From positions 141,228 to 205,227 of the IMG/VR virus record IMGVR_UViG_3300031576_000002: DNA of 64,000 nucleotides. One strand, written 5' to 3'. Position 1 is the first letter of the stretch, and each line of letters begins with the position of its first letter. The notes below the pieces were generated by a model, which saw nothing but the letters and a program-made list of their open reading frames with translations, was not told where the DNA came from and ran no database searches. Shown in pieces: positions 3,630 to 46,627 of this stretch. The translations under genes were made by a program, and so were the position numbers.

Positions 3630-3679
3630 CGCGATCTCAGAGATAGGCTTGGTGAGGTAGGCTAGAAGATAGTGCAAAG

Positions 3680-3800
3680 AGGGCGGCAGCATGCCACTTT
3701 CGTAGGCCCGGCTCCGCACCGGATCTACAGGAGTGTGTGGCTACATCCCGCTGCGCAGGCGCCAGGGCTTCCCAGTCCCCCGGGCACTTACTGCCGCCCT
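3680..3800 (-). ncRNA. Candidate 121-nt structured non-coding RNA (three-way junction, 5S-rRNA-like)
   Basis: 12-bp terminal stem AGGGCGGCAGUA/UGCUGCCGCCCU; arms CCCG/CGGG and GCCAC/GUGGC-UGUAG/CUACG-UCCGG/CCGGG; begins just after a TATAGT -10 box. Confidence 0.6.
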
Positions 3801-3803
3801 TCT

Positions 3804-3833
3804 ACTATACCCCTCAGAATCACGATTACGCGC
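3804..3833 (-). promoter_or_regulatory. Phage promoter GCGCGTAA-N16-TATAGT driving the ncRNA
   Basis: Matches the motif recurring across the window. Confidence 0.6.
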
Positions 3834-3951
3834 GGGCAGCCTCTACGGCCTCACCAGAAGCAACGATCTGCGTAGACTTGCGTCGAACCCTTTTTAGCGC
3901 CTCGACTTGAAGTTCGAGCGGCTGCCCGGCAGCATCGCAACCCTAACTTCT

Positions 3952-4575
3952 CTACGGCCCCAAAAGACGAATTGCTCTTCTGAGGTAGCCTGCTTGTACC
4001 GGCCCGTGCTCGCAATCATTCAGGCTCGGCCGCAAGCGGTGGTAGTAGTTCATGCGAATGGCCCAGTCCATCACACTCTTGACTCTGGACGGCTCAGGCG
4101 ACTCGCCAGGATCTCCCGTGCAGATGTAGCCTTGCAGATTGTCCTCGACGTCAAACACCTTGATTCCGTGCCCGCCCTCCCAGACAAGCCGGTGCCCGGT
4201 CTTCGGATCCTCGTCCTCGATGAGCGGCTCGACTTTGCCGTACTCACCCACGTTCGCGGGATCCGTTTCATCCCACCAGTGCGCGAGCAGATGCTTCAAC
4301 CGCGACTCTCGCCGGTGAGGCCGAATCCTTGAAGTCGTGTCCATGTAGCCAAGCCTCCGGTAGTCGAACCCTGGCAGAATAGCAATCTTCTGCTCCGGGA
4401 AATATCCACGCCTTTCCGTTACCGCGGACTGCCCCACGACCTCCGTAAACAGCGCTGGCAGCGCGGCAGGAGGAACCGTCGCAGCATGCCGGTTGTAGGC
4501 TGCGACTTCTCCACGCCCTGAGAAATCAAAGGATCCGGCTAGATGTGCAAGGATGTCATGCACGCCGTTTATCAT
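3952..4575 (-). CDS. C-terminal half of a split conserved phage protein (VHDxxxH...GExxAY...ALFTExxGQ)
   Basis: Continues the NLHFRG motif of 5067-5468; own ATG overlaps the HNH gene end. Confidence 0.75.
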   Translation of the reverse strand: MINGVHDILAHLAGSFDFSGRGEVAAYNRHAATVPPAALPALFTEVVGQSAVTERRGYFPEQKIAILPGFDYRRLGYMDTTSRIRPHRRESRLKHLLAHWWDETDPANVGEYGKVEPLIEDEDPKTGHRLVWEGGHGIKVFDVEDNLQGYICTGDPGESPEPSRVKSVMDWAIRMNYYHRLRPSLNDCEHGPVQAGYLRRAIRLLGP

Positions 4576-5089
4576 GAGGGCAGTAACCGTACAAACCGAG
4601 ACTCATATTGCAATTACAGCACAAAACCCGGTAACCCTCCGGATAGCCCTCTATTCTAAGCTCGTGAAATATCTCGCCCCTGTACCGAGATTTAGCTCTA
4701 TGCTGCCCACCCCCTCCACGGACGTGATCTAAGCACAAAAATTCGAGTAGCTCTTCCCCGCAGCATGCGCAGGCAGGGTGATCCAGCTTGCTGTAATGGC
4801 ATAGAGCTTCGTAGCGCTTGCTTCGCCGCCACTGCTTCAAATAAATTCGTCTCCTCTCCCGGAAAACAGGATCCTTTCCCCGTCGCCTGCTGTACTCTCG
4901 GAACTTCTCGGGACTAGCTTTGAAATACTCACGCGCCTGCCCCAAGACCTTCGCTCGAAACTCGGGCTCTTCGTGATACCGTTTGCGCTTGGCGGCAAGC
5001 ATGCACGCCTTGCACTTCCCGTAGGTACGGTAAAATTCTCTGCGTAGCTTAGCCGTCCCGCACCGATTACATATCTTTAGAGTGTCCAT
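4556..5089 (-). CDS. HNH (endonuclease VII-like) homing endonuclease
   Basis: N-terminal CxxC..CxxC; CACCG...LCLDHV...VLCCNCN...YGYCPH nuclease motif. Confidence 0.85.
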   Translation of the reverse strand: MDTLKICNRCGTAKLRREFYRTYGKCKACMLAAKRKRYHEEPEFRAKVLGQAREYFKASPEKFREYSRRRGKDPVFRERRRIYLKQWRRSKRYEALCHYSKLDHPACACCGEELLEFLCLDHVRGGGGQHRAKSRYRGEIFHELRIEGYPEGYRVLCCNCNMSLGLYGYCPHDKRRA

Positions 5090-5468
5090 GCACGTAGCAT
5101 AACATGAAAATACCCCGAAAGTGAAGGTTCTGATCTTGGGTAAAGAAAGGGTGCTCCGGACCTCCGGTGAATACCTTGAGCCGGTTGTTCTGCGTTACGT
5201 CCTCGACCATCTCCTCCGCATTGGCGTAAGGATTCTCGTCCACATACTCCACTTCAAACTTAGAAGTAATCCTGCGGAAAAGCTTGTCAAGATGAGCTAC
5301 GAGTGCTTGGTAGGACGGCACCGCAGACGCATCGTGAGCAGGCGCTTTCTCGTAAGCAGTAGCAACGGCTTCGAGGTATTCATCCCAGTCCACTGGCATC
5401 AACTTGGCCAAACGCTCAAGTAACTGCGCGTTTTTCTCTGGCGCAGGTGTATAGTAGTCAGCATGCAT
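5067..5468 (-). CDS. N-terminal half of the split protein (NPY...HP...NxxFRG)
   Basis: Conserved-looking part ends at FRG where the HNH insert begins; ATG lies inside the TIR of cassette 1. Confidence 0.75.
   Translation of the reverse strand: MHADYYTPAPEKNAQLLERLAKLMPVDWDEYLEAVATAYEKAPAHDASAVPSYQALVAHLDKLFRRITSKFEVEYVDENPYANAEEMVEDVTQNNRLKVFTGGPEHPFFTQDQNLHFRGIFMLCYVHGHSKDM
5426..5455 (+). promoter_or_regulatory. Phage promoter GCGCGTTT-N16-TATAGT, separated from the gene at 6712 by the cassette
   Basis: Motif match; TSD of cassette 1 overlaps the -10 box. Confidence 0.45.
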
Positions 5469-6687
5469 GACTGCTTAAGCCGCCACTTGCATAGCAGGTA
5501 AGCAGCCTTCTCGTTTCACAGAGGAACTTACAAGCGTATCCTCTCCACGAAGGGATAGCAGAGCCCGGTTTAAGACGTTTTTAGCCGCGTTGACATCTCT
5601 ATCAAGGACCAAGCCACAAGCAGAGCAGATATGGACTCTTTCACTCAAACTCTTCTTCACAGTCATTCCACATCCGCTGCACTCTTGGCTGGTGCCTCTG
5701 GGATTGACTTTTACCACTATCCTACCAGCTTCTTCCGCTTTGTAGGACAGCATGTGGAGCAACATCCCCATTCCAACATCTTTGAAGCTACGCCTGAATC
5801 CACGGCTGAGACCCTGGCTCATACCTTTCAGGTTCAAGTCTTCCACCGCAATCAGATCATACTCTTTGACCAAAGACTTAGACACTCCATCAAGAATATG
5901 CTTCCGAGTTCTTGTAACTTTCTGCCAAGCCTTAGCCAGTACCTTGACGGCTTTCCTTCTACGCTTAGATCCCTTCTGTCTCCTGGATACCGTTCTTTGA
6001 GCATGCTTGAGCTTCTTCTCGTTCTTGGCGTAAACACGTTGCCGCTCAATCAAGATGCCGTCTGAGGTAGCGACTAGAGCTTGCATGCCTAGATCAATGC
6101 CAATGACTTTGCCAGTCTTGAGAAGAGGAGCTGGAAGCGGTAGCTCACAGGATAAGACGGCGTACCAGCCGTCAGCTTCTCTTTTGACTGTGACCTCTTT
6201 AACCTTGGCATCAGGCGGAAGCTCCCGATAAGGATTCCAGCGGAAGTGTCCCAGCTTGGAAAGATGTAGCTTTTTGCTGTCAAACTTGAAACCTGACTGA
6301 TTGTATGTGAAGGAGTCGTACCGATCCCTACTCTTGAATCTGGGAAAGCCTGGCTTCTCTCCACGCTTGACTCTTCTGAAGAAAGCCTTGTACGTTTTGT
6401 CCAGTTTTTGAAGGACTGGGTGAAGAACTCTTGAATAGATCGTGTCATAGCCTTCTACCTGCTTTGAAACATACTTAAGCTCTAGGCACTGATCGTAGAA
6501 GCTGAGAGTTCTATTATGCTGCTTCCACTCCAGGATTCGTTGTTCCAAAGCACAGTTGTAGAGGAAGCGGCAGAAATCCAGAAGCCGCTGGAGATTGATC
6601 TCCTGGGCCTTGGTAGGTTGGAGGCGGAACTTGTAGGAACGGCGCACGGCTAGAGTGTATCACAAGGGAGTTAAGGAATCACGCATG
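5462..6687 (-). mobile_element. TIR-bounded tnpB cassette 1 (1226 bp, no transposase)
   Basis: Ends CATGCATGACTGCTTAA / rc CATGCGTGATTCCTTAA; flanking repeats TAGTAGTCAG (5452-5461) / TAGTAGTTAG (6688-6697). Confidence 0.85.
5475..6647 (-). CDS. tnpB: TnpB RNA-guided endonuclease, 390 aa
   Basis: YKFRLQPT...R.LYN.AL; RuvC GIDLG, AVEDL, DRDVNAAKN; Zn ribbon CSGCG/CSACG. Confidence 0.97.
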   Translation of the reverse strand: MRRSYKFRLQPTKAQEINLQRLLDFCRFLYNCALEQRILEWKQHNRTLSFYDQCLELKYVSKQVEGYDTIYSRVLHPVLQKLDKTYKAFFRRVKRGEKPGFPRFKSRDRYDSFTYNQSGFKFDSKKLHLSKLGHFRWNPYRELPPDAKVKEVTVKREADGWYAVLSCELPLPAPLLKTGKVIGIDLGMQALVATSDGILIERQRVYAKNEKKLKHAQRTVSRRQKGSKRRRKAVKVLAKAWQKVTRTRKHILDGVSKSLVKEYDLIAVEDLNLKGMSQGLSRGFRRSFKDVGMGMLLHMLSYKAEEAGRIVVKVNPRGTSQECSGCGMTVKKSLSERVHICSACGLVLDRDVNAAKNVLNRALLSLRGEDTLVSSSVKREGCLPAMQVAA

Positions 6688-6711
6688 TAGTAGTTAGTGA
6701 AGGGCTCGGCC

Positions 6712-7179
6712 ATGAGTCAACCAGTAAAAAAAATCTCACACCGCTTCACTTGGAGCGACATCATCCGGGAGTCGGCATGGGCACAGTGGATTCGTATGAC
6801 TCGGCCGCCAGGCTCGCGAATAACGCATACTCCGTGGGGGTGCATCCTCTCCGACATTCCTTCTGCCCAGCAGAAAATTGAAGCTCGAAAACTGCGCCGG
6901 GCTTACGAGTCTTGGATCGCCCAGGATGAAGAGCGTGCTCGTGACGCAGAGTTGTTCCGATTCTGGACCGCCGTGTTCCCTCCGCATCGCTTGCTCGTAG
7001 AGGTCACCGAAGCTTACGCGGCCGGCTTGCCGTACAAGAATATCCTCCGCGAGTACCGGCTACGGTTCAAAGTTCAGCCTCTCGGCTGGGCAAAGTGGGA
7101 AGCATTTGTTCGAGATCCGGAATCCGGCGGCGGAGTTCTCGTTCCATTCCGGGGTAGCCAAGAAGGAACGTCACGATAG
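6712..7179 (+). CDS. Hypothetical protein (rare plus-strand gene)
   Basis: Protein-like composition; fills a gap in minus-strand coding; downstream of a + strand promoter in the reconstructed empty site. Confidence 0.55.
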   Translation: MSQPVKKISHRFTWSDIIRESAWAQWIRMTRPPGSRITHTPWGCILSDIPSAQQKIEARKLRRAYESWIAQDEERARDAELFRFWTAVFPPHRLLVEVTEAYAAGLPYKNILREYRLRFKVQPLGWAKWEAFVRDPESGGGVLVPFRGSQEGTSR

Positions 7180-8272
7180 CGTCTGGACTCTGAAGTACCA
7201 CGTCTCTCCAAGAGAGCGGGTACTTGGAGTAGGTGAGCTTGATCCCCAGCTCTTCAAAGTTCAATCCAAGCGCTGGACCGAATTTACGAAACCGGGAAGG
7301 AAACTTTCCTATCTCCTCTTCAGGGATGTGCCCTTTGACGTCAAAAGCGAGCGATACGATCACTTCGCTATCCCTGAGACGGTACATGCCCACGGGTCCG
7401 CCAGAGGGCTTGAAAATGATGGATTCTTGATCGAACCAGTTTCCCAGCTCCACCGCATCACGCCACTCCACCCCTTCTACTAGAATCGACCGCTCCCGCT
7501 CAGCGTAGAATCCGTAGACTGGCGTCCAGGAGTACCCTCGACGTTCAAGCTCTGAAGTCAACTCTCCGTGGCGACGCCGGTTCTCGGCCCTCGACCTGTT
7601 TTCCTTTTCAGTGCGCTCCTCGATCTCCCGATCCCGCCAACGGATCCTCTCCGGTCGCGGAGAGGTCTGAAACTCCTTCTCTCGGTCACGCTGTCTCTCC
7701 CACTGTTCCGGTACCTTTGGATCGAACTTCACGGCTCTGGGGTCGGGGCGGTAAGCAGACAGAACCGTGTAGGCTGCGCCCGGCCGCTGAAGGTACTCCA
7801 GATCCGTCACGCTAATCCCCAGCAAAGCTATCGCCCGTCCGAGAATGCCGGCCTGCACCTTGGGCACGTTAGACCGCCATCCCGATCCGGGCGGCTTCTC
7901 GCGCGGATCTTTGCTGACAACCATCTCCTCCCAGAATTCCCTTACGCCAGGGCCTAGCAGTTGCCGCATCGGTCGCACGGCTTCCATGGGAACGGTTGGA
8001 TAGATGCCGTCCCCACCAAGCTGACCGCTGAGAAGATCAACTTCGACTCCACCCGGCAATAGATTCCAGTTGTGGACTTGCCCGTCTGGGAGACGGCCAT
8101 AGGCGATCTTGCCGCCTAGCTCTTGCTGCACGGCAAAGGCCACAGCAAGCGAATCCTTGGCCGTCGCTCCTTGGCTGTGAACGAGGCGCTGTACCTCTTG
8201 AAGTAGCGGCACAAAGTCGGCTGGAACTTCTCGCCCCTGCCCCAGCAGACTCAGAGCCCTGGCAAGAATCAT
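7067..8272 (-). CDS. Two-domain protein with C-terminal DUF3293-like domain
   Basis: VLSAYRP...ENRRRHGEL...L...GY...YGFY..ERSILV...AVELG..FDQESII. Confidence 0.65.
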   Translation of the reverse strand: MILARALSLLGQGREVPADFVPLLQEVQRLVHSQGATAKDSLAVAFAVQQELGGKIAYGRLPDGQVHNWNLLPGGVEVDLLSGQLGGDGIYPTVPMEAVRPMRQLLGPGVREFWEEMVVSKDPREKPPGSGWRSNVPKVQAGILGRAIALLGISVTDLEYLQRPGAAYTVLSAYRPDPRAVKFDPKVPEQWERQRDREKEFQTSPRPERIRWRDREIEERTEKENRSRAENRRRHGELTSELERRGYSWTPVYGFYAERERSILVEGVEWRDAVELGNWFDQESIIFKPSGGPVGMYRLRDSEVIVSLAFDVKGHIPEEEIGKFPSRFRKFGPALGLNFEELGIKLTYSKYPLSWRDVVLQSPDAIVTFLLGYPGMERELRRRIPDLEQMLPTLPSREAEL

Positions 8273-8294
8273 CACGTCTCCCGAAAAGCCACGC

Positions 8295-8675
8295 TCAAGG
8301 CACAGGTAGGTAAGCCTTGGCCGCACTGACCAGGAGTACGCCAAAGGTCTGGCCTACCTTGCCGAGCAGCGCGTTCAGCTTCTCGCGGTCGCAGTTGCCC
8401 CGCTGAAGCGTCGCCAGGTCCGCCTTGGAGATCTCGATCCTGGCCTCGGGAGTCAGATTCTTCATGAGCAGGTCACGGGCTTCCTGGCTCATCTTGGCGC
8501 CGCGAATGGCGTGAACGATGTCAAACCAGATGTCCTGCGCGAACGCCTTGAGAAGATCCCGGATCTCAGGATCTTCAAGCATGCCCCCGATCTCGTCTTT
8601 GATCGTGTCCCGAAACCCGAGATCGTTGAGCAGAACGCCGAGCGTGCCCTTGATGTTGTCAAGCGAGTTAGCCAT
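8295..8675 (-). CDS. Hypothetical helical protein
   Basis: SD GAGGT before ATG; overlaps upstream stop. Confidence 0.75.
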   Translation of the reverse strand: MANSLDNIKGTLGVLLNDLGFRDTIKDEIGGMLEDPEIRDLLKAFAQDIWFDIVHAIRGAKMSQEARDLLMKNLTPEARIEISKADLATLQRGNCDREKLNALLGKVGQTFGVLLVSAAKAYLPVP

Positions 8676-11965: not shown

Positions 11966-12014
11966 GGAGTCTCCTTTCAAAAATATCATACAACCGCATT
12001 CAAAAAATTTCCGG

Positions 12015-12088
12015 TGGGCACGGAAGGAATCGAACCTTCGACCACTCGGTTAAAAGCCGAATGCTCTAACCAACTGAGCTACGCGCCC
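12015..12088 (-). tRNA. tRNA-Lys(UUU)
   Basis: GGGCGCG-TAGCTCAGTTGGTTAGAGCA-TTCGG-CTTTTAA-CCGAG-TGGTC-GAAGG-TTCGATT-CCTTC-CGTGCCC-A; followed by CCG, not CCA. Confidence 0.96.
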
Positions 12089-14372: not shown

Positions 14373-15955
14373 TTTCCCTCACGCTTGCGCGGGCTTGATG
14401 ACCATCACGGGTACACGACCGCCGCGCATCTTCAGGCATTCGTCTATCCGCTCTGCCACGTCTGCGAGCTTTTCCGCGTCCGCTTCTACTCTAGCCAGAG
14501 CTTTGGCATACTCTGCCCGCTCGAAATCTGGAAGATTGCGCAACACGATCGTCGCCGCGCTTCGGCCCAGATACACCATAGTAAGAGCCAGGTCGGATAG
14601 ATCCAGATGTCCCTCATCTATGCAGGTGTTGACAACTGCTTCAAGCCTACTCGTGGCGCGCTGCATGTCCTCCTGATAGACATCCTCTTCTGAATTCAAA
14701 ACGTCCTCCGATCCTCAAACTTGAAGCCTGCGGCTGCAAGGTGGGCGCTTACCTGCGCAATCGCGCGTGCTTGGTGAGCTGCGTACTCTACCGCGGTTCT
14801 GGGGATGTCCAGCTCCCGCTCTGAATTCTCGATCGCGTTCTCCAGGATCTTCCACGGCATCGACTCGACCAAGGCGAGGGTGTCTTCACTCACACGGCGG
14901 AAGATGAGTCCCGCGCTCGGATAGCCCCACATTTCTCCAATAGCGAGGAGGTTGACCTGGTTCTTCGTCCAGGCTACATGGACAGGGTTGAGAGCTTCAG
15001 TCGGCATTTTTGACGGCCTCCCTGACGCTGTCCAGCGTCCGCTCGATATCGCTCAGACGATCTACGATCGGCTGGACGGCTTCGTTCACATCAGAAGGCT
15101 GAGCCGTACTTCCTATCTCGCCAGAGATGTCTTCAAGCCTTTCCAAAATCTTGTCGTAGTCACCCTCGACGCTGCGGATCCGGTCGCGCAGGTAGCTGAA
15201 CTCCACCGCCATCCAGCGACGAAGTTGTTCGAGCGTCAGCTCTTCCGAATCGGCCGGCTGCACCGACGGCTGCAACGGCGACAGAACTGTAGGCTGGAGC
15301 TTTTCTGCTTTTTTCATCGAGCCCTCAGTGCGCCATACACGGCGCTGATTTTGGATGCTTAGAAGAATCGTAACGCAGGCGCAAAGTCCGGTAGAGCACG
15401 GACAAGTCCGCGTCTTCTGCGCCTCCTACTAGAATACCGTTCTTGTACACGTCGGCGCGGAATACTCGATCTGCGCCATCCCACCAGACCTCGGCCCAGA
15501 ATGCTGCCGCTGCTACGGGAGCCCAGACCGCTTGTGCCCGGAGTTGCTCTGCGGTACCAGCTTCTACTTCCAGGCCGGCGATGTCGGTCATGGTCAACGC
15601 ACTCTCGGATAGCTGAGGAGGGCGCATGTAGTTGTGCCAGCACAACTAGGTAGGCTTAGCCTTTCTACTTTCTAACTGCTCCAGATCTTTATGCGCCGCT
15701 CTCAAGGCAACAACAGAGTCCTTCAGGAAGTCGGAGATCACTTCTCGCTCCACCTGAGTCGTCGCTGTATCGAACTCTTGCCTGAGAAACTCCAACGCCT
15801 TCGTGTGCCGGTGGATCTGTCCAAGAATGCGTGCTCGTGCCTGGCGTATCTCAGATACTTTTCGCTTCTTCTTGGGCTCTTTCTTGGGCGGAAGTACCCG
15901 CGTGGACCCGAAGTCATTCATGAAGTCTTCGGCGGCTGGAAACTATCACCTTTAT

Positions 15956-17167
15956 GCGACAGAAGAGGCCGCTCTGTGCTACAGTATCGGCTATGATTCA
16001 GCTCACCCTCCGACTCAAGCTCAGGCCAACTCCTGAGCAGAAGTCTATCTTCTATACCACCTCGGAGCAGCATACTCAATCTTACAACTACGCCTGCAAC
16101 TTTGGCTGGAAGAACAGCACTGCCAACCGGATCGAGATTCATCATGGTGTCTACCGTGCCCAAAGAGAGGCGACTCAGCTTCCTTCTCAACTTGTCGTAT
16201 CCAGCATTACCAGGGCTTCTGAATCTCTAGCCTCTGCCAAAGCCTTGAGAAGGAAAAAGAAGAAAGTAGCCTGTCCAAAGTCCAAACTCTGCCCCATCCG
16301 ATACGATTCAAGATCCTCCACAGTCAATCTCAAAGAAGGCTTTGCCGCTCTAGCAACCGTATCCGGCAGACAAAGAGTCCAGTTCAAAGTCCCTGACTTT
16401 CAACTTCCATACATTGACTGGAAAGTCTGCTCTTCCGATCTTATCCGGAATAGGAAGGGTAACTACTTCCTTCATGTCGTAGTCAGCCGTGAAGAGGAAC
16501 CGTTCATACCCGTTAAGAGAACAGTCGGAGTCGATCTTGGTATCACGCATCCAGCCGTAACTTCCAAGAACAAGTTTTTGGGTAAGAGGAGCTGGAAGAA
16601 CGTAGAAAGGAGAAACTTCAAACTGAGGCGTTCCCTTCAAGCCAAAGGCACAAAATCTGCCAAGAGACATCTTCAAAAGCTCTCTGGTAGACAGAAACGT
16701 TTCCGGCGTGACTGTGACCGTGTCTTGAGTAAGCAGTTGGTCCAGTCTTGTAAGAAGGGTTCTACCTTGGTATTTGAAAACTTGAAAGAGATCCGATCCG
16801 GTAACTCCAAAGGCAAGAGGTTCAACCGGAAGCTCCACGGTTGGAGCTTTGACCAACTTCAAGCCTTTGTAGAGTACAAAGCAAAGATGAGAGGTATCCA
16901 AGTTGTTTACGTGGATCCCCGGTACACCTCTCAGAAATGCTCCAAGTGTAAGTTCAGGAGCAAGAAAAACCGGATCTCTCAAAGTAGCTTCCAGTGTCGA
17001 AGCTGCGGGTTCAGGATTCATGCTGATCTCAATGCAGCTAGAAACATACGGAAGCGGTATCTTTTTACTCAGGCTAAAAGTTTGGGTAACGGGCTTATGT
17101 CAACAAGCCTAGTGCAGAGGTCAAAAGATCATCTGCAAGCTGCCTGCTTCGGCCGGTAGTAGTTGAT
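15956..17167 (+). mobile_element. IS200/IS605-family (IS1341-type, tnpB-only) insertion
   Basis: Inserted after TTTAT (15951-15955); right end hairpin ...GCTGCCTGCTTCGGCCGGTAGTAGTTGAT; removal restores stop codon (CFLA-TAA) of the interrupted minus-strand gene; ends uncertain by a few bp. Confidence 0.75.
15993..17159 (+). CDS. tnpB: TnpB RNA-guided endonuclease (distinct lineage)
   Basis: VGVDLG, LVFENL, YTSQKCSKC, CRSCG, HADLNAARN; leaderless after TGTGCTACAGT. Confidence 0.95.
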   Translation: MIQLTLRLKLRPTPEQKSIFYTTSEQHTQSYNYACNFGWKNSTANRIEIHHGVYRAQREATQLPSQLVVSSITRASESLASAKALRRKKKKVACPKSKLCPIRYDSRSSTVNLKEGFAALATVSGRQRVQFKVPDFQLPYIDWKVCSSDLIRNRKGNYFLHVVVSREEEPFIPVKRTVGVDLGITHPAVTSKNKFLGKRSWKNVERRNFKLRRSLQAKGTKSAKRHLQKLSGRQKRFRRDCDRVLSKQLVQSCKKGSTLVFENLKEIRSGNSKGKRFNRKLHGWSFDQLQAFVEYKAKMRGIQVVYVDPRYTSQKCSKCKFRSKKNRISQSSFQCRSCGFRIHADLNAARNIRKRYLFTQAKSLGNGLMSTSLVQRSKDHLQAACFGR

Positions 17168-17658
17168 GCCAGAAAGCACTCCGGCTCTTCCGTCGCGTTC
17201 AGGTACAGGCAGCACACCTCCGTCCAGGGTCTGCCATCCGTATCGACCACTTCGGATTGCCAGCAAACCTTCTCCGGCTGGATCTCGGGACTATCGGTGT
17301 GGCAATCGAACGTACAATTCGGATTGACTCGATCGCAAGCGGACAAGAAGATCAGCAAACTGATGACCTTCACCCACCTCATCCCGTTCCAGTACATTCC
17401 CTTCCCCCGCACTTCTGCCCACCAGCGTTCCACTACAGAATTGTTAAGATACGTCTCGGCCGAGTTGTGATTCAAGACTTCCTCTCCTCCTGCCGTGAAG
17501 ACTCGAATCCGATTCCCGTAGCGTCCCTTTCCAGGAATCCGCCACCGGACGCCTCGCGGTTTCCGATCGGTGTTGCAGTAGCCTTGATCTATCTCAGCCC
17601 GCAGACCAAGGCCAGCCCCATTGATTTCGGCCGCGATAGTTTTCAATCGGCGCGACAT
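17095..17658 (-). CDS. Hypothetical protein with internal lipoprotein-like signal; native stop displaced by the IS
   Basis: MRWVKVISLLIFLSAC internal; reads into the element after CFLA. Confidence 0.6.
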   Translation of the reverse strand: MSRRLKTIAAEINGAGLGLRAEIDQGYCNTDRKPRGVRWRIPGKGRYGNRIRVFTAGGEEVLNHNSAETYLNNSVVERWWAEVRGKGMYWNGMRWVKVISLLIFLSACDRVNPNCTFDCHTDSPEIQPEKVCWQSEVVDTDGRPWTEVCCLYLNATEEPECFLASTTTGRSRQLADDLLTSALGLLT

Positions 17659-17968: not shown

Positions 17969-18769
17969 CTATATTTCTGTCCAGGCTCGAACCCGTTCTC
18001 GGCACTCCGCCAGATACCCCTCTTGCAGGTCCAGGAAGTGCCAGGACTTGTAAAGAATGAAAGGACTGTGCGAGGTTGCGATGACCTGGAAACGCTTCGC
18101 CAGTTTGGGAACGATCTCATTCCAGAGAACCATTTGATTCGGCAGGCTCAGGCTCATGTCAGGTTCATCGAGCAGAATCGTACTCGGGCCTGTCCGTGGA
18201 AGCGTCTTCACGTACTCCGAGAACGCTGTCCAGCCCTCTACCCACAGGCTGTTATATTTCCGATCTGGATTTTTTGTAAGGTCCGGAACTTGATCCAGCA
18301 ACTCTGCGATTCTTTCAATCTTATGGATTCGCCGCTGTCCCTCGCTCGGCTTTTGCGCGATCTCCTGAATCTGGTCCTTCATCGAAGTCATGCCATCGGC
18401 AGAATTCTCGGCCCGGTCCACGAAGAAGGAAAGCCCGTCTCGATCCGCGGCTGCATTGAGAAAGGTTGGAGTCCCGTCCCATTCTATATTTGCAGTACAC
18501 TGGCCCGGTGCTCGTATGGCTAAGCAGTCTGGAAGATTGGGCGGCTTCCTCCGCAAAACCCCGATCTCGATAATGTCTCCGGGGTCAGGGTGTTTCGACC
18601 AGCCTCCTGTCGTGATCCCGCAGTAGACCCCCGTGATCTTGAGCGCAGTCGTCTTCCCGCACCCGTTCGGCCCAAAGAGAATGTTGACTCCGGGCTTGAA
18701 CTTGAGCTTGCCCTTGAACGCAGGAAGCTGCGCGGCAAAGCCCGTCTTGACTCGGAAGGACTGGATCAT
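17969..18769 (-). CDS. ABC/AAA-type ATPase
   Basis: Walker A GPNGCGKTT, signature SEGQ, Walker B ILLDEPD, H-loop TSHSP; leaderless ATG 18769. Confidence 0.9.
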   Translation of the reverse strand: MIQSFRVKTGFAAQLPAFKGKLKFKPGVNILFGPNGCGKTTALKITGVYCGITTGGWSKHPDPGDIIEIGVLRRKPPNLPDCLAIRAPGQCTANIEWDGTPTFLNAAADRDGLSFFVDRAENSADGMTSMKDQIQEIAQKPSEGQRRIHKIERIAELLDQVPDLTKNPDRKYNSLWVEGWTAFSEYVKTLPRTGPSTILLDEPDMSLSLPNQMVLWNEIVPKLAKRFQVIATSHSPFILYKSWHFLDLQEGYLAECRERVRAWTEI

Positions 18770-18820
18770 CGGACGTACTATACAGCGCGCTTCCAAAAAT
18801 ACGCACCTATCCCGTCGAGC

Positions 18821-20046
18821 CATGCGTGACTCCTTAAGCCCTCTGTGCTACCATCCAGCCATGCGGCGTTCCTACAAGTTCCGGCTTCAACCGACCAAGG
18901 CTCAGGAGATCAATCTCCAGAGGCTCCTGGACTACTGCCGCTTTCTCTACAACTGCGCTTTGGAGCAGCGTATTACAGAATACAAACAGCATAAGAGGAC
19001 TCTCAGCTACTACGATCAAGCCTTAGAACTTAAGCACGTATCCAAGCAGGTAGAAGGCTACGACACAGTCTACGCCAAAGTCTTGCAGGTTGTCCTTCAA
19101 AAACTGGATCTAGCTTACAAGGCTTTCTTCAGAAGGATCAAGCGTGGAGAGAAGCCGGGCTTTCCACGGTTCAAGAGTAGGGATCGGTACGACTCCTTTA
19201 CCTACAACCAGTCTGGTTTCAAGTTTGACAGTCAAAGGCTGCATCTTTCCAAGCTGGGCCATTTCCGCTGGAATCCTTATCGACAACTTCCACCAGACGA
19301 TAAGGTCAAAGAGGTCACAGTCAAAAGAGAAGCCGACGGTTGGTACGCAGTCTTATCCTGTGAGCTACCCCTTCCAGAACCTCTTCCCGCGACTGGAAAG
19401 GTCGTTGGTATTGATCTAGGCATGCAAGCTCTAGTTGCTACCTCAGATGGAATCGTAATTGAACGCCAACGTGTCTACGCCAAGAATGAGAAGAAGCTCA
19501 AGCATGCTCAGAGAACGGTTTCCAGAAGAAAGAAAGGCTCTAACCGTAGAAGAAAAGCAGTCAAGGTATTGGCTAAGGCTTGGCAGAAAGCTACAAGAAC
19601 TCGGAAGCATATTCTTGATGGAGTGTCTAAGCAGTTGGTACAGAACTATGATCTGATTGCGGTTGAAGACCTGAACCTGAAAGGGATGAGTCAAGGGCTC
19701 AACCGTGGATTCAGGCGTAGCTTCAAGGATGTCGGAATGGGGATGTTGCTTCACATGCTGTCCTACAAAGCGGAAGAAGCTGGTAGGATAGTGGTGAAAG
19801 TAGATCCCAGAGGAACCAGCCAGGAATGTAGTGGATGCGGAGCAACTGTGAAGAAGAGTTTGAAAGAAAGAGTTCATAACTGCTCTGCTTGTGGCTTGGT
19901 CCTTGATAGAGATGTCAACGCGGCTAAAAACGTCTTAAGCAGGGCTCTGCTATCCCTTCGTGGAGAGGATACGCTTGTAAGTTCCTCTGTGAAGCGAGAA
20001 GATTTCTTAAGTGCTGCTCAGGCAGCGGCTTAAGCAATCACGCATG
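18821..20046 (+). mobile_element. TIR-bounded tnpB cassette 2 (1226 bp, no transposase)
   Basis: CATGCGTGACTCCTTAAGCC ... GGCTTAAGCAATCACGCATG (18/20 IR); flanking CCCGTCGAGC (18811-18820) / CCCGTCGAAT (20047-20056). Confidence 0.88.
18861..20033 (+). CDS. tnpB: TnpB RNA-guided endonuclease, 390 aa, paralog of 5475-6647
   Basis: About 41 differences in 390 aa by manual count; RuvC D/E/D intact; real start ATG 18861. Confidence 0.97.
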   Translation: MRRSYKFRLQPTKAQEINLQRLLDYCRFLYNCALEQRITEYKQHKRTLSYYDQALELKHVSKQVEGYDTVYAKVLQVVLQKLDLAYKAFFRRIKRGEKPGFPRFKSRDRYDSFTYNQSGFKFDSQRLHLSKLGHFRWNPYRQLPPDDKVKEVTVKREADGWYAVLSCELPLPEPLPATGKVVGIDLGMQALVATSDGIVIERQRVYAKNEKKLKHAQRTVSRRKKGSNRRRKAVKVLAKAWQKATRTRKHILDGVSKQLVQNYDLIAVEDLNLKGMSQGLNRGFRRSFKDVGMGMLLHMLSYKAEEAGRIVVKVDPRGTSQECSGCGATVKKSLKERVHNCSACGLVLDRDVNAAKNVLSRALLSLRGEDTLVSSSVKREDFLSAAQAAA

Positions 20047-20375
20047 CCCGTCGAATCGCCGCCTGCCCAGGGACTTCGCCAGTGGGGGAGGGGTAGGAGG
20101 TCATCCGACCGCAGCTCGATCGACATCTCTAGGGCTTGGTACTCGTAGCACTCCAAGCCCGCCAGCCACCAGCCAGAGGCAATCAGCTCCTCTTCCGAGG
20201 CGTCGGTAGGATCCTGCATGCAAACGTCGAATACGATCTGCGGCTCGTCAGCCATACCGCAGGTCGTCCGCTGAAGGGCCAGGATGGCGCAGAAGAAACC
20301 GGCCGGCGCCTTGGCCTCCGCCAACATCGGAATCCGCAAGGTGTGCGCAAGTAGGAGTAAGGCTAAGGCACGCAT
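20007..20375 (-). CDS. Secreted/membrane hypothetical protein; 3' end interrupted by cassette 2
   Basis: Hydrophobic N-terminus; empty site gives ...GGDSTG-TAG. Confidence 0.55.
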   Translation of the reverse strand: MRALALLLLAHTLRIPMLAEAKAPAGFFCAILALQRTTCGMADEPQIVFDVCMQDPTDASEEELIASGWWLAGLECYEYQALEMSIELRSDDLLPLPHWRSPWAGGDSTGMRDCLSRCLSST

Positions 20376-25914: not shown

Positions 25915-27312
25915 CTACACCTCCATCAGCGCGCGCAGCTCGGGATCCTGCGTGTCGGCGCGGAACGTGAAGCCTGTAGAATGGGGATGTCCACCCCCGC
26001 CATAGCGCTTGGCCAAGAGGCTGATGTCGAGGCGCTCCGGCTTGGAGCGAAGCGAGGCTTCGTACTGCGGTATTACCTCCCTGCCAACGAACTGGTACGC
26101 TTCTGCGTATTCAGTACAACCACAATTCTCTACCATGCACTTGACCTTGGCATCCAAAAACAATTGATGCCCTCCGTTCCTATGGCCACAGATACAGAAC
26201 TTCAAAGCTTCTAAATCGTCAGTTTCCTCCAAATACCGCTCAAACGCAGTCTTCGGTTGTCCTTCTGCCGCCACGTCCTCCACCCGCCGAATGCACGCGG
26301 CGAAGTCGATGTCGTGCTTCAGGTAGAGGTGCTCGCATACCTCGTCCCGGAGGACGGACGTGCGGACCGCGAGACCACTCAATCTGGCGAACACTTCCCT
26401 TGGTTTGAATGGGTCACCGGGACACCCACATATACAGCCCGCTACTGTACACTTAAGAGTCTGCAAGCTTTTCGTTCCCCGGTACTTGTCCTGCATCTCG
26501 TGCTCACTAATTTTATGGTGGCAGAGACAGACACCAGTTCCGCTCCCCCGCAGGGTTACGGGCCTCGCCCCCTGGGCGATCTGCTCGACGAGTTTCTGCT
26601 GAGCCCGCAGGATGGCGGTGCCCTGTTCCGCCAGTCGGGCCATCAGGTAGCTATCTCCATCCGGAGTCGGATCGTTCGTTTGCGTGAGGTTTTCCCACCA
26701 CGACTGGAACGTCATGGGAAAGCTGCGGATCGCCGCGTTGACCTCGCGCGAATTGGGAAGTTTCCATCGCCACAAGTCTCGATCTTGGACGACCCGGACG
26801 AGCAAAGGGGAAGGATGGCCATACTCCTCTGGCATGTACCCCGTCTCGTAAACTACACGCTTCATCCACTCGACGAAGGATTCGGCAGCCGAGCCTATCG
26901 AAGATGGTTCGTCGCCGAACGACAGCAGAACTCCCGATTTGATGTCCCGAATCCACGTAGCGTACTGCCACGCCAGCCACGCGCCCGAATGATCCATGTC
27001 GAAAAAGCAGAAGTCCAAGTCTTTCAACTCATCGGCCGCGCTTTTGTGGTGGTCCAGCACGACCAGGCTCCTGGCCCGCTGCTTCATATCCAGCAGGGTG
27101 ACGCGCGGGTAGCTAAGGTCCACGATGATGACGTCGCGGCCCTGCACGTCGGGAGGAGGCAGGTGGTAGCCGCCGGGGACGAATTCGGCGTCCTTGAGGC
27201 CACCCCACATTTCCAAAACGAACCTGGCGCAGTAGCCATCCTGACAACCAATGTCCTCCCCTTTTTCGTTCTTGGTGCCGTGGTAGAGGACGAGTGTGTT
27301 CTTGTCATTCAT
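25915..27312 (-). CDS. DHH/DHHA1 phosphoesterase with inserted Cys/His modules
   Basis: VLYH...CQDG, IVDLS, VLDHHK, SGA, DRDLW, SLRS, GGGGH. Confidence 0.9.
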   Translation of the reverse strand: MNDKNTLVLYHGTKNEKGEDIGCQDGYCARFVLEMWGGLKDAEFVPGGYHLPPPDVQGRDVIIVDLSYPRVTLLDMKQRARSLVVLDHHKSAADELKDLDFCFFDMDHSGAWLAWQYATWIRDIKSGVLLSFGDEPSSIGSAAESFVEWMKRVVYETGYMPEEYGHPSPLLVRVVQDRDLWRWKLPNSREVNAAIRSFPMTFQSWWENLTQTNDPTPDGDSYLMARLAEQGTAILRAQQKLVEQIAQGARPVTLRGSGTGVCLCHHKISEHEMQDKYRGTKSLQTLKCTVAGCICGCPGDPFKPREVFARLSGLAVRTSVLRDEVCEHLYLKHDIDFAACIRRVEDVAAEGQPKTAFERYLEETDDLEALKFCICGHRNGGHQLFLDAKVKCMVENCGCTEYAEAYQFVGREVIPQYEASLRSKPERLDISLLAKRYGGGGHPHSTGFTFRADTQDPELRALMEV

Positions 27313-33674: not shown

Positions 33675-34499
33675 TCACGGTGGAATAATCGGATCCGCCT
33701 CGTGAAAAATGACGTCTACACGGTTGGTAACGGAACTGAATTTGGGAAGAGTCAGAAGAACAACGTCCGATCTTTCGACTGACAGATTTGGATTCTGACG
33801 GGCGTCATGTTTGGGCGGCAGTCGATCAATTTCTTCTGGGGCAAATGGGCGATTGACGGTCCGCCGTTGGTAGAAACTACCGCGTTTGAGAGGCGCTGCC
33901 AGATCATTCCAATTGTAACCCTTCTGGAACAGCATTTCTTGCATGTCTGACTGCTTCTTACCGTGCAGCTCTTTGTGAGAAAAATGAGCACGAGCCAGCA
34001 TCTGGACGCTGTTTTTGGCAGCGTCTTGCTCTCGCCACAATACCGCGTTCGCGGCCTCCCACAACGTAGGCACTGTGTAAGCTCGGCAATCAAACGAAAC
34101 TCTCGCCCATTCTTCATCGTGACGTCTAATAAATAGCGGCCCCTGGAGGACAAAGGCGGTGGTTGCCATTGAAGCGATGACCGATACCAATTTCTGGATT
34201 CGGCCGTTGAAGAAAATCTCACTCGCGTAGGAGTCGGAGTACAGCACCAAGGTGATTTCGTCGGACTGGCAGTATCCGATTCGAGCGTTGGTTTGTTCGA
34301 CGAGATGACGAGTGACCGCCCTCATCAAGTTGACAAATCCGACGTCAAAGGGACGCTCTAGGCCAACGGTGAAAGTATGAAAAGAACGGCCGTCGATACG
34401 AACAATAACAGGCAGCAAAGGCATAAACTTCTCACCTGCATGGATACTTTCCAGCATTTTCATCCGGTCGCCCAAATCATCGGGGCCTGGATAACCCAT
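33675..34499 (-). CDS. thg1: tRNA(His) guanylyltransferase Thg1-like protein (3'-5' polymerase)
   Basis: LGDRMK..E, VRIDGRSFHTFT, YCQSDEI, FDCR, WREQDA.KNS, NWND, KRG. Confidence 0.95.
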   Translation of the reverse strand: MGYPGPDDLGDRMKMLESIHAGEKFMPLLPVIVRIDGRSFHTFTVGLERPFDVGFVNLMRAVTRHLVEQTNARIGYCQSDEITLVLYSDSYASEIFFNGRIQKLVSVIASMATTAFVLQGPLFIRRHDEEWARVSFDCRAYTVPTLWEAANAVLWREQDAAKNSVQMLARAHFSHKELHGKKQSDMQEMLFQKGYNWNDLAAPLKRGSFYQRRTVNRPFAPEEIDRLPPKHDARQNPNLSVERSDVVLLTLPKFSSVTNRVDVIFHEADPIIPP

Positions 34500-36815
34500 G
34501 TTTCTCACGGAGTCTCTCCCTCCTGCTTCACTTGAACACCAGGACAGCCTTCTGGTCACCCGGGATCTTATCGAGCACGTCCTGCATCTTGATGTTGCGC
34601 CCGCTCAGGATCTCGGCCACCAGCGGGTGGGGATCCTTCCCGAAAGACCCCAACTCGTGCGTCCAGACGGACCGTCCAACCAGCGCTTCTAAGCGCTCGT
34701 GCACCAGCTCAAACGGAACCGTCAGGGGGGTCATGAACAAGAGGCTCAGCTCTTCGGCCCGCTCTTCACGAGGCGCCGCCCGGACCGACTCCATCGTGCT
34801 GCGCAGCCGCGCTCGGCAAGCCTCGCACCACTCCTTCGCCCCTACCTTCTGGTTGCAAATCCCACAGGTTCTCGTGCCCAGTTCGGCGCTCATGTCAGCG
34901 CTCCATTCCGTTTTGTTAGTTTCGTTACAGCGTCAAGGACTCGAAGCAAGAAATCATTTCTCTGTTTATACTCCGGAAATAGACGATCCCACACTTTGCA
35001 CTCTTTCGACGTTCGGTCTGCCTCTGCATGACAGTCCGTAAAATCCAATTCTTCCACATGACGGAGCAGACTTGCGTCTTTTTCTACGCAAGACAGACAG
35101 TGTTCAACTACCGTAGCAACGTAGTCGTCTCTCTTCCTTGTTCTTGGCCAGTAGAATTTAGTCTCTCCGGCGCTATCAACGAGGAAGAACGAAAATGATC
35201 TCAAAGTGACGAACACTGGACTGCCAACTTCTATCGCGGCGCCACATCCCGAGCAGAAATGTTTCTTGCCAGATGGATCCATGTCAGTTCTCCAACGGGT
35301 TCGGCTCGACAATCTTGGTTCGGAAGGGCCACCAGCAGGGCGCCACCCACACGACTCCGGTTGGCCCCGCGGCCCGCTCGATTCTCTTGCCATCGGGCAG
35401 GTAGGCAACGCCTGGCCCTCGTAGAAACTCTACCAGGTGCCACCCCAGCCAAATCTTCAGGCGAGGGAACCGGCCGAGGCTGGAATGTTGGTACATGCCC
35501 GGTGCCCCCTCACCAGTCACAGGGCGTGACCTTCCCGCTCTTGATGTGCTTCTCTGCCCGAAGTATCACTTCACGCAGCATCTTTGCACGCGCGGCTAGG
35601 TCGTCCAGCGCATCCTTCCTCGTGTCGCCCTCGCCTTCGATCAACGCCATCCCTACGGGATTCATGATGGCGGCTCGCCACCACGTCTGCCTTCGCCCTA
35701 CGACTACTTCCCCGAGGGTCTTGTCTAAAAAATCAATGAACACGCTACTTGGCTTCTTCATGGCTCGTCCTCTCGCTCAGTCAGCTCGAACCGAATCGAG
35801 TCGCCCAGCACGATAACTTGACCGCAGCCCTCGACAGGACACACGCCCCCAACACCCGGATCCTTGAACGCTTCCGACTTGCTCTGCTCTCTGTGAGCCG
35901 GGCAGTAGTTCTCGTACTTCGCCACCACGTAGCTCCAACCCTTCGTCTTGCCTGCGGACTCGGGTAGCGTGCCGGTGAGGCCCAAGAGGATGCCGACGAG
36001 CCCTTCATGCCCGGGTGGTCGCCGTTCATGCGTCAGGCCGGTCTTGAGATCGTGGTAAGGAGCGAGTCGGCAATCCTGCACCTGAATGGCCGGATCCATC
36101 AGCAATGTTTCGTTGCACCAAACTCGCTGCTGGATCAGACTCGCTATTGCGTCGCGGTCCGTTTTGGTTGCCCGGTTCATCACCTCGATGATGCGGCGGG
36201 CGATCAGGCGGTTGACGGAGTCGGGTGTAGGGGAGTCGCGCGTCATGCCTTCTACGCAACCACGATACCCTCCTCCACACTCGTGAACTACTATGGCGCA
36301 ACCATCTGCAATCTTGCGCTGCTCCTCATCACAGGCATGGCAATCGGCTATCAAACCGGAAAGAGACTCACGTTTTACCGCCACGAACTCGTGGTTCAAC
36401 TGGTCCATCAGTGGGTCAGCCATTGGGCGTTCCTTTCCCGGCCAAGATGCCATACGCAAGACACCCAAACCGCATATCGTCATCGGTCTCGCCCGGCACG
36501 AACCTCTTGCGGCAAAGGTTGATGTCTACTATCTCAAAGCCTGCGGGAATTGCGTGGTACCATTCGCCTGGAAACAGCAGCAACACACCGCCACTAGCGT
36601 CCAGTTCATCCCAAGGGCGCAGCCCCATCTCGCACAACGCAAGATATGACATGGTGCGGAGCGACTCCCAGTCGCAGGGAGCGCACGCTGGGATCGGAGC
36701 ACCGGCCTCGCGCTCAAACTGCGGCGTCACGATGTTGACTGGATCGTCAGGGCCAGCGCCAATAGCACGCCGAAGCCGGGCGGCCAACTTGGACTCCCGT
36801 CCACTCTGTAGTAGA

Positions 36816-46430: not shown

Positions 46431-46627
46431 TACCCGCCTTCCAGCTCGCGCTCCTCGGCCAGCCATCCGGGAATCGTAACTGACTCTCCGTCGCGGTCTA
46501 CGATCTGGGAGAGTGGAATCCAGACCTGACGGCCGTCCTGCTCAACTAGCAGGGCTCGATCCGTCTCGCGAACGATTCGTACTTCGCAGCGCACGCTGGC
46601 GTCATCTTCAAATCCATTGAATCTCAT
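46430..46627 (-). CDS. Small conserved phage beta-protein
   Basis: ETDRALLV...VWIPLSQI...IPGWLA. Confidence 0.75.
   Translation of the reverse strand: MRFNGFEDDASVRCEVRIVRETDRALLVEQDGRQVWIPLSQIVDRDGESVTIPGWLAEERELEGG

Follow-up and report, generated by a model that had tools for sequence, protein, structure and literature searches.

TnpB genes between IS4-family inverted ends in a viral contig: probable transposase-less cassettes with 10 bp target-site duplications

The last 64 kb of the 205,227 bp IMG/VR contig IMGVR_UViG_3300031576_000002 (Ga0247727_10000083) contain two copies of a gene for the nuclease TnpB, each enclosed by inverted repeats and flanked by a short direct repeat. This stretch of 64,000 nucleotides, the whole of which was analysed, is referred to here as the window. 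Such an arrangement is not that of the IS200/IS605 insertion sequence (IS) elements, which have no terminal inverted repeats (TIR), make no duplication and insert 3' of a motif of 4–5 nt (PMC13565253, PMC4810608). The original prediction for this locus, made from the DNA letters, stated that neither IS200/IS605 nor IS607 elements make target-site duplications (TSD), and this is supported by the same two papers. How, then, did TnpB come to lie between these repeats? Has it been captured by a cut-and-paste transposon, and if so, which family supplied the ends? Or are the repeats incidental to an ordinary TnpB element? Here we investigate the cassettes and their insertion sites. We think it likely that they are non-autonomous IS4-family elements that carry a captured ISDra2-like TnpB; they would presumably be moved by a transposase acting in trans, and the nuclease may serve for homing.

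Copy 1 (positions 5462–6687 of the window, minus strand) and copy 2 (18821–20046, plus strand) align without gaps over exactly 1226 bp, and their similarity ends at the outer CATG on both sides, which bears out the two 1226 bp elements described in the original prediction. A search with the TnpB protein, one of the checks proposed there, revealed that this contig has a third copy, which lies outside the window and is again exactly 1226 bp long (L003, 2961–4186). The sole gene of each of the three copies is tnpB, and no transposase is encoded within the cassette. In copy 2, tnpB occupies 18861–20033 (plus strand; 390 codons and a stop), as identified by Pfam, by alignment of the D/E/D residues and the zinc finger to ISDra2 TnpB, and by the ratio of nonsynonymous to synonymous divergence (dN/dS). 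In copy 1 it occupies 5475–6647 and starts with GTG. The left end of copy 2 is 40 bp long and comprises a 20 bp repeat followed by TGCTACCAT (18846–18854, plus strand), an extended -10-like motif read from the sequence, which lies 6 bases before the ATG. Related motifs are present at the matching place in copies 1 and 3, in a second type of TnpB, and in L013, a relative of the cassette TnpB. An extended -10 promoter had been claimed here. The motif itself is visible in the sequence, but a two-hexamer promoter scan made no call at it, and it is best described as a putative promoter. At the other end, the tnpB stop codon (20031–20033) is the TAA of a CTTAAG within the right repeat (20027–20046), as had been predicted.

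The 20 bp ends are complementary at 15 of 20 positions in copy 1, 18 of 20 in copy 2 and 17 of 20 in copy 3. In copy 2 the left TIR, CATGCGTGACTCCTTAAGCC, lies at 18821–18840 (plus) and the right TIR at 20027–20046 (minus); both fit the repeat pattern with 0 mismatches. In copy 1 the right-end repeat, CATGCATGACTGCTTAAGCC, is at 5462–5481 (plus) and the left-end repeat, CATGCGTGATTCCTTAACTC, at 6668–6687 (minus). Inverted repeats are present at both copies as claimed, with 15/20 for copy 1 in place of the 14/17 given earlier. The pattern occurs 4 times in the window, where 0.1 occurrences are expected. All six cassette ends begin with CATG, in agreement with the CAT ends published for the subgroups IS231 and ISH8. 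Position 9 is A in both cassette ends, as in the right-hand ends of IS4 elements, while most left-hand ends have T.

Each cassette is flanked by its own 10 bp repeat. For copy 2 these are CCCGTCGAGC (18811–18820) and CCCGTCGAAT (20047–20056), which agree at 8 of 10 positions, the first 8 bases being identical. For copy 1 they are TAGTAGTCAG on the right-end side (5452–5461) and TAGTAGTTAG on the left-end side (6688–6697) of the plus strand, or, on the tnpB strand, CTAACTACTA on the left and CTGACTACTA on the right (9/10). The repeats of copy 3, on its tnpB strand, are GGTGGAGCGG on the left and GGTGGAGCGA on the right (9/10). At a fixed junction the binomial chance of at least 8/10 is 4e-4 and that of at least 9/10 is 3e-5; among the 62,690 positions of the window taken at 1226 bp spacing, 44 reach 8/10 and 2 reach 9/10. 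The three duplications are all different and, taken as independent, have a joint chance of about 4e-13. When the flanks are joined with one repeat, sensible reading frames are obtained at all three sites, including the two for which restoration of coding had been claimed, MAEPFT[D/N]YYTPAPEK... at the copy 1 site and ...GG[D/G]STG-stop at the copy 2 site. The copy 3 site is a stop/start overlap (GCGATGA); through the duplication, the upstream gene keeps its end and the downstream gene its ribosome-binding region. Because each cassette has its own repeat, matched above chance, and because the frames are restored on joining, we take the repeats to be TSD.

The gene interrupted by copy 1 has a further feature. 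At position 6 of the right repeat copy 1 has A, where all other ends have G (TCATGCATG in comparison with TCACGCATG in copies 2 and 3). This A creates an ATG at 5468–5466 on the strand of the gene, in frame with the interrupted open reading frame (ORF) at 5067–5468 (minus strand), so that the gene now begins MHADYYTPAPEK in place of MAEPFT[D/N]YYTPAPEK. The change looks as if it had restored expression of the gene once the cassette was in place. A separate observation concerns the left end of copy 2, which when read outwards on the minus strand is GGCTTAAGGAGTCACGCATG, with an ATG at the very tip, preceded by a spacer and a Shine-Dalgarno-like AAGGAG. That ATG is in frame with a downstream AAA-ATPase gene (AAA_21, AbiEii-like; ORF 17969–18823, minus strand), the likely native start of which is the ATG of MIQSFRVK near 18772. 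The in-frame outward ATG may be due to chance.

To which family do the ends belong? The consensus of the six ends, CATGYRTGAYNNCTTAAGCC, served as the search query. Among viral contigs the pattern was found in the source contig only, with one chance match at a gene start. Among the metagenome matches, the best 80 of 89 stretches were classified, and the counts are thus lower bounds. At least 12 of them are exact termini of elements of about 1.46–1.51 kb, and 4 are the source contig. Among species genomes at least 3 of the 16 matches are such termini, in Deltaproteobacteria, Planctomycetota and Patescibacteria assemblies. The elements at these termini are 1459–1514 bp long and encode proteins of 440–460 residues with the PF01609 DDE domain. 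They score 119–231 bits against the NCBIfam IS4-family model NF033592 (cut-off 115), and the Y, R, E and K of the Y(2)R(3)E(6)K motif are invariant among them. This motif is the hallmark of IS4 transposases, and CAT ends with duplications of about 10 bp are features of the family (PMC2266710). Duplications in the family span roughly one helical turn (8–13 bp), a range that includes the 10 bp of the cassettes. TnpB is present in none of these IS-terminus loci.

The agreement with the IS4 elements extends to individual bases. The right-hand end of L093 and the left end of copy 2 agree at 20/20 positions; for the end of L057, taken together with its inner flank, the agreement with the right end of copy 3 is 22/25, counted by eye. 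As judged from their ORF coordinates and end sequences, the transposase genes of L057 and L045 run into the right-hand repeat and stop at the TAA of its CTTAAG, just as tnpB does. Relatives of the L093 transposase found on long contigs by protein search (L127, L128 and L129) also have CATG ends, and their perfect 10 bp duplications mark three independent insertions (GGGGCCGCAG, GACGAGAAGC and ACGCGCCGAC). In L121 the duplication is 9/10 and the transposase gene carries a stop codon. The proposal that the cassettes are transposase-less cut-and-paste elements with IS4-family ends is supported by this match to the termini of bona fide IS4 elements and by the 10 bp TSD of their relatives.

Several observations on these loci stand apart from the question of the ends. 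The TSD mismatches of copy 2 (18819–18820), copy 3 (L003 2960) and L121 are all of 1–2 bases touching one end of the element; they could reflect an 8–9 bp duplication with extra bases, or mutation. A phage tail tape-measure gene is found about 1.3 kb away from a complete IS4 element of this clade with a perfect 10 bp TSD (L128/L130, on the 59 kb contig ERZ25039482 contig_4811); such elements do enter phage or prophage DNA. The IS4 copy of L127 (GCA_016711215.1, 774 kb contig) lies in a local repeat, with GGGGCCGCAGCTTGGTAGCTG twice within 60 bp, about 1.2 kb from cas2. Of the 80 classified metagenome matches, 42 are a coding stretch of the DNA polymerase III tau/gamma subunit (..MRDxLSLLDQ..; for example L022, L024 and L025). 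Any match to the pattern translates to M-R-D-x-L-S, and assignment to the tau/gamma class required a following L-[LTIV]-[DE]. This coding stretch is a trap, in many bacteria, for searches with this repeat.

The original prediction placed the ends in the IS231 group. The published IS231 consensus is CAT-------AA--TAA---, with duplications of 10–12 bp and a distribution mostly in the Bacillus cereus group, and that of ISH8 is CAT-----------T-----, with duplications of 10 bp, no target specificity and a distribution in archaea and proteobacteria (PMC2266710). The cassette ends have the CAT and the TAA (15–17) of IS231, but at positions 11–12 they have TC, TG, GT or CG and not AA. The CAT, the T at position 15 and the 10 bp duplication all fit ISH8. 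The nearest named plasmid-borne transposases are the haloarchaeal ISHvo12, ISHme2 and ISH5, with 36–40% identity among the best 25 matches. All of these best 25 plasmid matches of the related transposase are haloarchaeal, and the Bacillus records that match fall below them. ISHvo12 on pHV1 of Haloferax volcanii has the ends CATCCGTGTTCGGTTAAGCG and CATTGGTGTTCGGTTAAGCA and a perfect duplication, CTCTCCAGAG. The placement in IS231 is thus ruled out as the best fit, by positions 11–12 and by the haloarchaeal nearest relatives; the sequences point instead towards the haloarchaeal IS4 elements, and the subgroup is probably ISH8. BLAST of the 40 bp left end against plasmids gave no match.

The TnpB of each copy, of 390 aa, contains the HTH_OrfB_IS605, OrfB_IS605 and Cas12f1-like_TNB domains of Pfam. 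Its RuvC D, E and D and its zinc finger align with ISDra2 TnpB (8EXA, E 5e-52), and the match of the catalytic residues confirms that the RuvC site is intact. The three copies are 85–87% identical in DNA, with synonymous divergence (dS) of 0.45–0.6 and dN/dS of 0.10–0.14, which indicates purifying selection on TnpB in all three. Copies 2 and 3 are 98–100% identical at cassette positions 701–750 and 801–1000 (window about 19521–19570 and 19621–19820; L003 about 3661–3710 and 3761–3960) and 68–92% identical in the other 50 nt windows, while copies 1 and 3 are closest around positions 151–300. This mosaic points to gene conversion between copies within one genome. Constraint on the RNA, considered as the cause of the high 3' identity of copies 1 and 2, was ruled out by the same three-way comparison. 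The nearest relatives of this TnpB (L012, L013 and L015) are 49–55% identical to it. Neither these nor the distant viral TnpB loci L004, L005 and L011 have TIR above the background of 12–13/16, so that the IS4 ends are a peculiarity of this lineage. TnpB as such is common in phages, with matches in 610 INPHARED records.

A probable omegaRNA scaffold lies at 19830–20046 (plus strand), as judged from a consensus fold of the three copies. In the common fold of these last 217 nt, a terminal hairpin at about 20001–20039 has as its 3' arm the inner 13 nt of the right repeat. In this final hairpin, columns 174/208 and 187/194 of the alignment form compensatory pairs. Ahead of it lies the motif GGAGAGG...CCUCUGUGAAGCGAGAA, which is also present in the relatives L012 and L013; these have a hairpin and then few bases at the corresponding place. 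If the fold holds, the scaffold may end at the cassette boundary, and the guide might begin with the duplicated 10 bp. By analogy with other TnpB, the DNA just 3' of the right end, 20047–20062, is the candidate guide, and its first 10 nt would be the right TSD of copy 2. A layout in which the guide starts after the duplication, as in Fanzors, was considered and rejected, since with a duplication of 10 bp the occupied site would then keep both motif and target and the element would cut itself.

These features can be combined into a model. Two ends of 20–23 bp, both of the right-hand (transposase-distal) type of an IS4 clade, would bound the cassette, with only a short promoter, an ISDra2-like tnpB and a 3' guide-RNA scaffold between them. 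Both ends would be bound by a DDE transposase of the IS4 family that acts in trans and most likely stems from IS copies on the host chromosome; this enzyme would excise the cassette and insert it at a 10 bp staggered cut, which would leave the 10 bp duplications. From the extended -10 motif, tnpB would be transcribed as a leaderless mRNA, as the spacing between this motif and the ATG suggests. With the last hairpin of the scaffold built on the right repeat and ending at the boundary, the guide would be flanking DNA, from the duplicated 10 bp onwards. The nuclease could then cut the same site where it is unoccupied, either in a co-infecting relative or after excision, and recombinational repair would recopy the cassette. 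A more tentative extension, which we hold possible but short of probable, is that a canonical bacterial-type TnpB and its guide RNA were grafted into an IS4 cassette of a jumbo phage, that the right repeat became the last stem of the scaffold, and that the cassette acts as a gene drive in co-infecting relatives. If true, this would be the prokaryotic counterpart of the adaptation of Fanzors to cut-and-paste transposons, and would explain why three old copies are intact under strong purifying selection.

Several results weigh against mobilization in trans and homing. The window and those stretches of the contig that were read (about 130 kb lie outside these) yielded no IS4 transposase, so that the search proposed earlier for a transposase with matching ends in this phage was negative to that extent. 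The large window ORFs tested have no DDE domain. The 205 kb contig contains no further match to the end pattern, and IMG/VR searches with a seven-transposase profile and one peptide pattern gave no confirmed relative of the IS4 transposase. The empty-site relatives that were also to be looked for did not appear: megablast of window 17–22 kb against INPHARED found no related phage, and two flanking proteins searched against IMG/VR returned the source contig only. All three TSD are imperfect, with 4 mismatches in 30 bp, which means that the insertions are old, or at least not recent, and that the cassettes may no longer move. The 4–5 bases upstream of the three TSD (CTTCA, CCTAT and TTCCC) have no common motif, and a fixed target-adjacent motif for homing is thus not evident; either its definition is loose, or some of the copies are unable to home. 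The guide-RNA fold is derived from three sequences and has a single-sequence z-score of -1.6, and neither the gathering nor the E-value threshold yielded a guide-RNA family in Rfam. Finally, most of the IS4 relatives on short metagenome contigs have no duplication. Here L038 and L057 have one element flank in common, beside which the element end is inverted in L038. This discordance indicates that short contigs around a multi-copy element are chimeric, which would account for the missing duplications; chimeric assembly is demonstrated for L038/L057 and assumed for the other short contigs.

Are the cassettes, then, fossils? They may have been inserted long ago by an IS4 transposase and be immobile now, with TnpB kept for its own use, whether for homing or gene drive directed at co-infecting relatives or for a function that the phage has adopted. 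This explanation has the same origin as the one we prefer and differs from it only on present activity. The imperfect TSD agree with it, when set against the perfect ones of active relatives, as do a dS of this size in cassettes that have kept both a low dN/dS and the exact length of 1226 bp. It would also suit the stretches over which copies 2 and 3 are 100% identical, seen as gene conversion in one genome, the change in the right end of copy 1 that makes an in-frame start for the interrupted gene, and the lack of a transposase found nearby. However, the ends are still complementary at 15–18 of 20 positions and match live IS4 ends at up to 20/20, and a transposase could be encoded by the host or within the 130 kb of contig outside the parts that were read. 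We regard loss of mobility as a possibility to be taken seriously, though on balance a doubtful one.

Two further explanations dispense with an IS4 transposase altogether. The cassettes could be ordinary IS200/IS605 elements with TnpB only, moved as single-stranded DNA by a Y1 TnpA, in which the repeats are incidental. The TnpB is typically ISDra2-like, its nearest relatives (L012, L013 and L015) have no TIR, and the right end has a subterminal hairpin. Yet neither the TIR nor the duplications have a place in IS200/IS605 elements (PMC13565253, PMC4810608), the three copies each have a different 10 bp TSD, with the minute joint chance given above if independent, the ends belong to IS4 elements, and there is no common motif of 4–5 nt to the left of the element; we give this explanation almost no weight. 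Alternatively, the cassettes could have spread solely by TnpB-guided cleavage and recombination, the flanking repeats having arisen through repair. According to PMC10690162, TnpB elements are retained by guide-directed cleavage of vacant sites, and the mosaic identity between the copies shows that recombination has occurred. Homing, however, recopies an element into the same site and cannot make three unrelated ones, and it would leave unexplained both the identity of the ends with IS4 termini and a fixed TSD of 10 bp equal to that of the IS4 relatives. Spread by this route alone is scarcely credible.

The preferred reading, a TnpB cassette with IS4 ends, can be set beside several known systems. 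With the TnpB-only IS1341 group of the IS200/IS605 family it shares the protein family, the order of the domains, the 3' guide-RNA motif and the compact size, and differs from them in its TIR, its TSD and the lack of a common 4–5 nt motif on the left. With ISHvo12, ISHme2, ISH5 and the clade of L045, L049, L057, L082, L093, L127 and L128 it shares CATG ends, a ..GTG....TTAAGC.. core and the 10 bp TSD. Unlike the elements of this clade it has no transposase, is 1226 bp long and not about 1460–1510 bp, has two ends of the right-hand type, and carries tnpB as cargo. The transposase of IS231A reportedly moves the MIC231 cassettes in trans. These mobile insertion cassettes of the Bacillus cereus group have IS231 ends around passenger genes, and are cited in PMC2266710 (its references B2 and B3). 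Like the cassettes described here, they are IS4-family elements without a transposase, in which two ends enclose a cargo. The IS4 subgroup is different, given the bases at positions 11–12, and so is the host range, and the cargo here is an RNA-guided nuclease with an RNA scaffold predicted to overlap one of the ends.

TnpB has been found with DDE transposases before. Six DDE-associated branches, DDE-1 to DDE-6, were described by Altae-Tran et al. in 2023, and solo TnpBs with the ends of transposase-bearing elements were also reported (PMC10691335). The DDE partners named for TnpB are ISL2, IS630 and IS1031 (PMC13565253), and IS4 appears in the main text of the 2023 paper only in a comparison of mobility (PMC10691335). 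The likeness to our cassettes lies in a prokaryotic TnpB within a transposon with TIR, the 3' end of tnpB being near the transposon end. The families to which ISL2, IS630 and IS1031 are assigned, IS5 and IS630, produce duplications of 2–3 bp, in which they differ from the IS4-type cassettes.

Parallels within viral genomes come from viruses of eukaryotes. Fanzor1 is present in IS4-type elements of Ectocarpus siliculosus virus 1 (ESv-2, which is ISvEsV1_1, and ESvi-1A/B) with 8 bp duplications (PMC3627910). In Spodoptera frugiperda ascovirus 1a a two-copy element with Fanzor1 only has inverted ends, and its repeat is predicted to lie in the RNA scaffold (PMC10711439). As in our cassettes, a nuclease of the TnpB family is found in a virus between inverted ends with duplications, in some cases without a transposase. 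The Fanzor1 elements differ in their eukaryotic viruses, their rearranged RuvC site and their duplications of 8 bp or less. The cassettes, in contrast, have a canonical bacterial-type TnpB in a prokaryotic virus and a 10 bp TSD that is too long to belong to a fixed scaffold. The original prediction presented TnpB in a cut-and-paste cassette as a parallel to Fanzors. The cassette stands, and the parallel is less new than was thought, given the DDE-associated TnpBs (PMC10691335) and the algal virus elements (PMC3627910). Full-text literature searches brought up no earlier account of an IS4-family cassette with a prokaryotic TnpB, whether in a phage or elsewhere, and the viral and metagenome collections scanned contain no second example of TnpB between IS4 ends. 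The cassettes link TnpB of the ordinary IS605 type with the IS4 family, for which Fanzor1 in an algal virus had been the only partner on record.

The usual view is that TnpB earns its keep by restoring transposons, such as IS605 and IS607, whose excision leaves no break behind. What benefit it could bring to a cut-and-paste DDE transposon is raised as an open point in a 2026 review (PMC13565253). The cassettes offer a testable system for this question, with an element of 1226 bp, defined ends, candidate partner transposases with near-identical ends, and three natural pairs of predicted guide and target. If the fold is correct, a prokaryotic virus would also have the solution proposed for Fanzors, in which a terminal repeat is absorbed into the guide-RNA scaffold. 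For annotation there is a warning, in that TnpB-only genes of phages are not all derivatives of IS605.

The rest of the window has some viral character. Matches to phage families were obtained for a DHH phosphoesterase (25915–27312), a tRNA-His guanylyltransferase homologue (33675–34559) and an N6/N4 DNA methylase (46624–48153), all on the minus strand. The only tRNA gene noted in the window is a tRNA-Lys(UUU) (12013–12088, minus), and a protein with weak DUF3293 and SAM-lyase-like matches is encoded at 7067–8344 (minus). Between 7 and 18 kb of the window, 9 of the 10 proteins tested have no PHROG family, and this leaves no conserved anchor for a synteny search. A tblastn search with a 511 aa protein of the window gave no match.

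A second, unrelated TnpB of 388–401 aa is encoded at 15954–17198 (plus strand). It is about 30% identical to the first type, has the TNB and OrfB_IS605 domains of Pfam, and is single-copy in the contig. Its ends, ATGCGACAGAAGAG and ACGCGACGGAAGAG, are complementary at 13/16 positions, which is the background level, and no duplication is seen. Its left end contains the 11-mer CTCTGTGCTAC of the IS4-type cassettes, at the same distance from the start codon.

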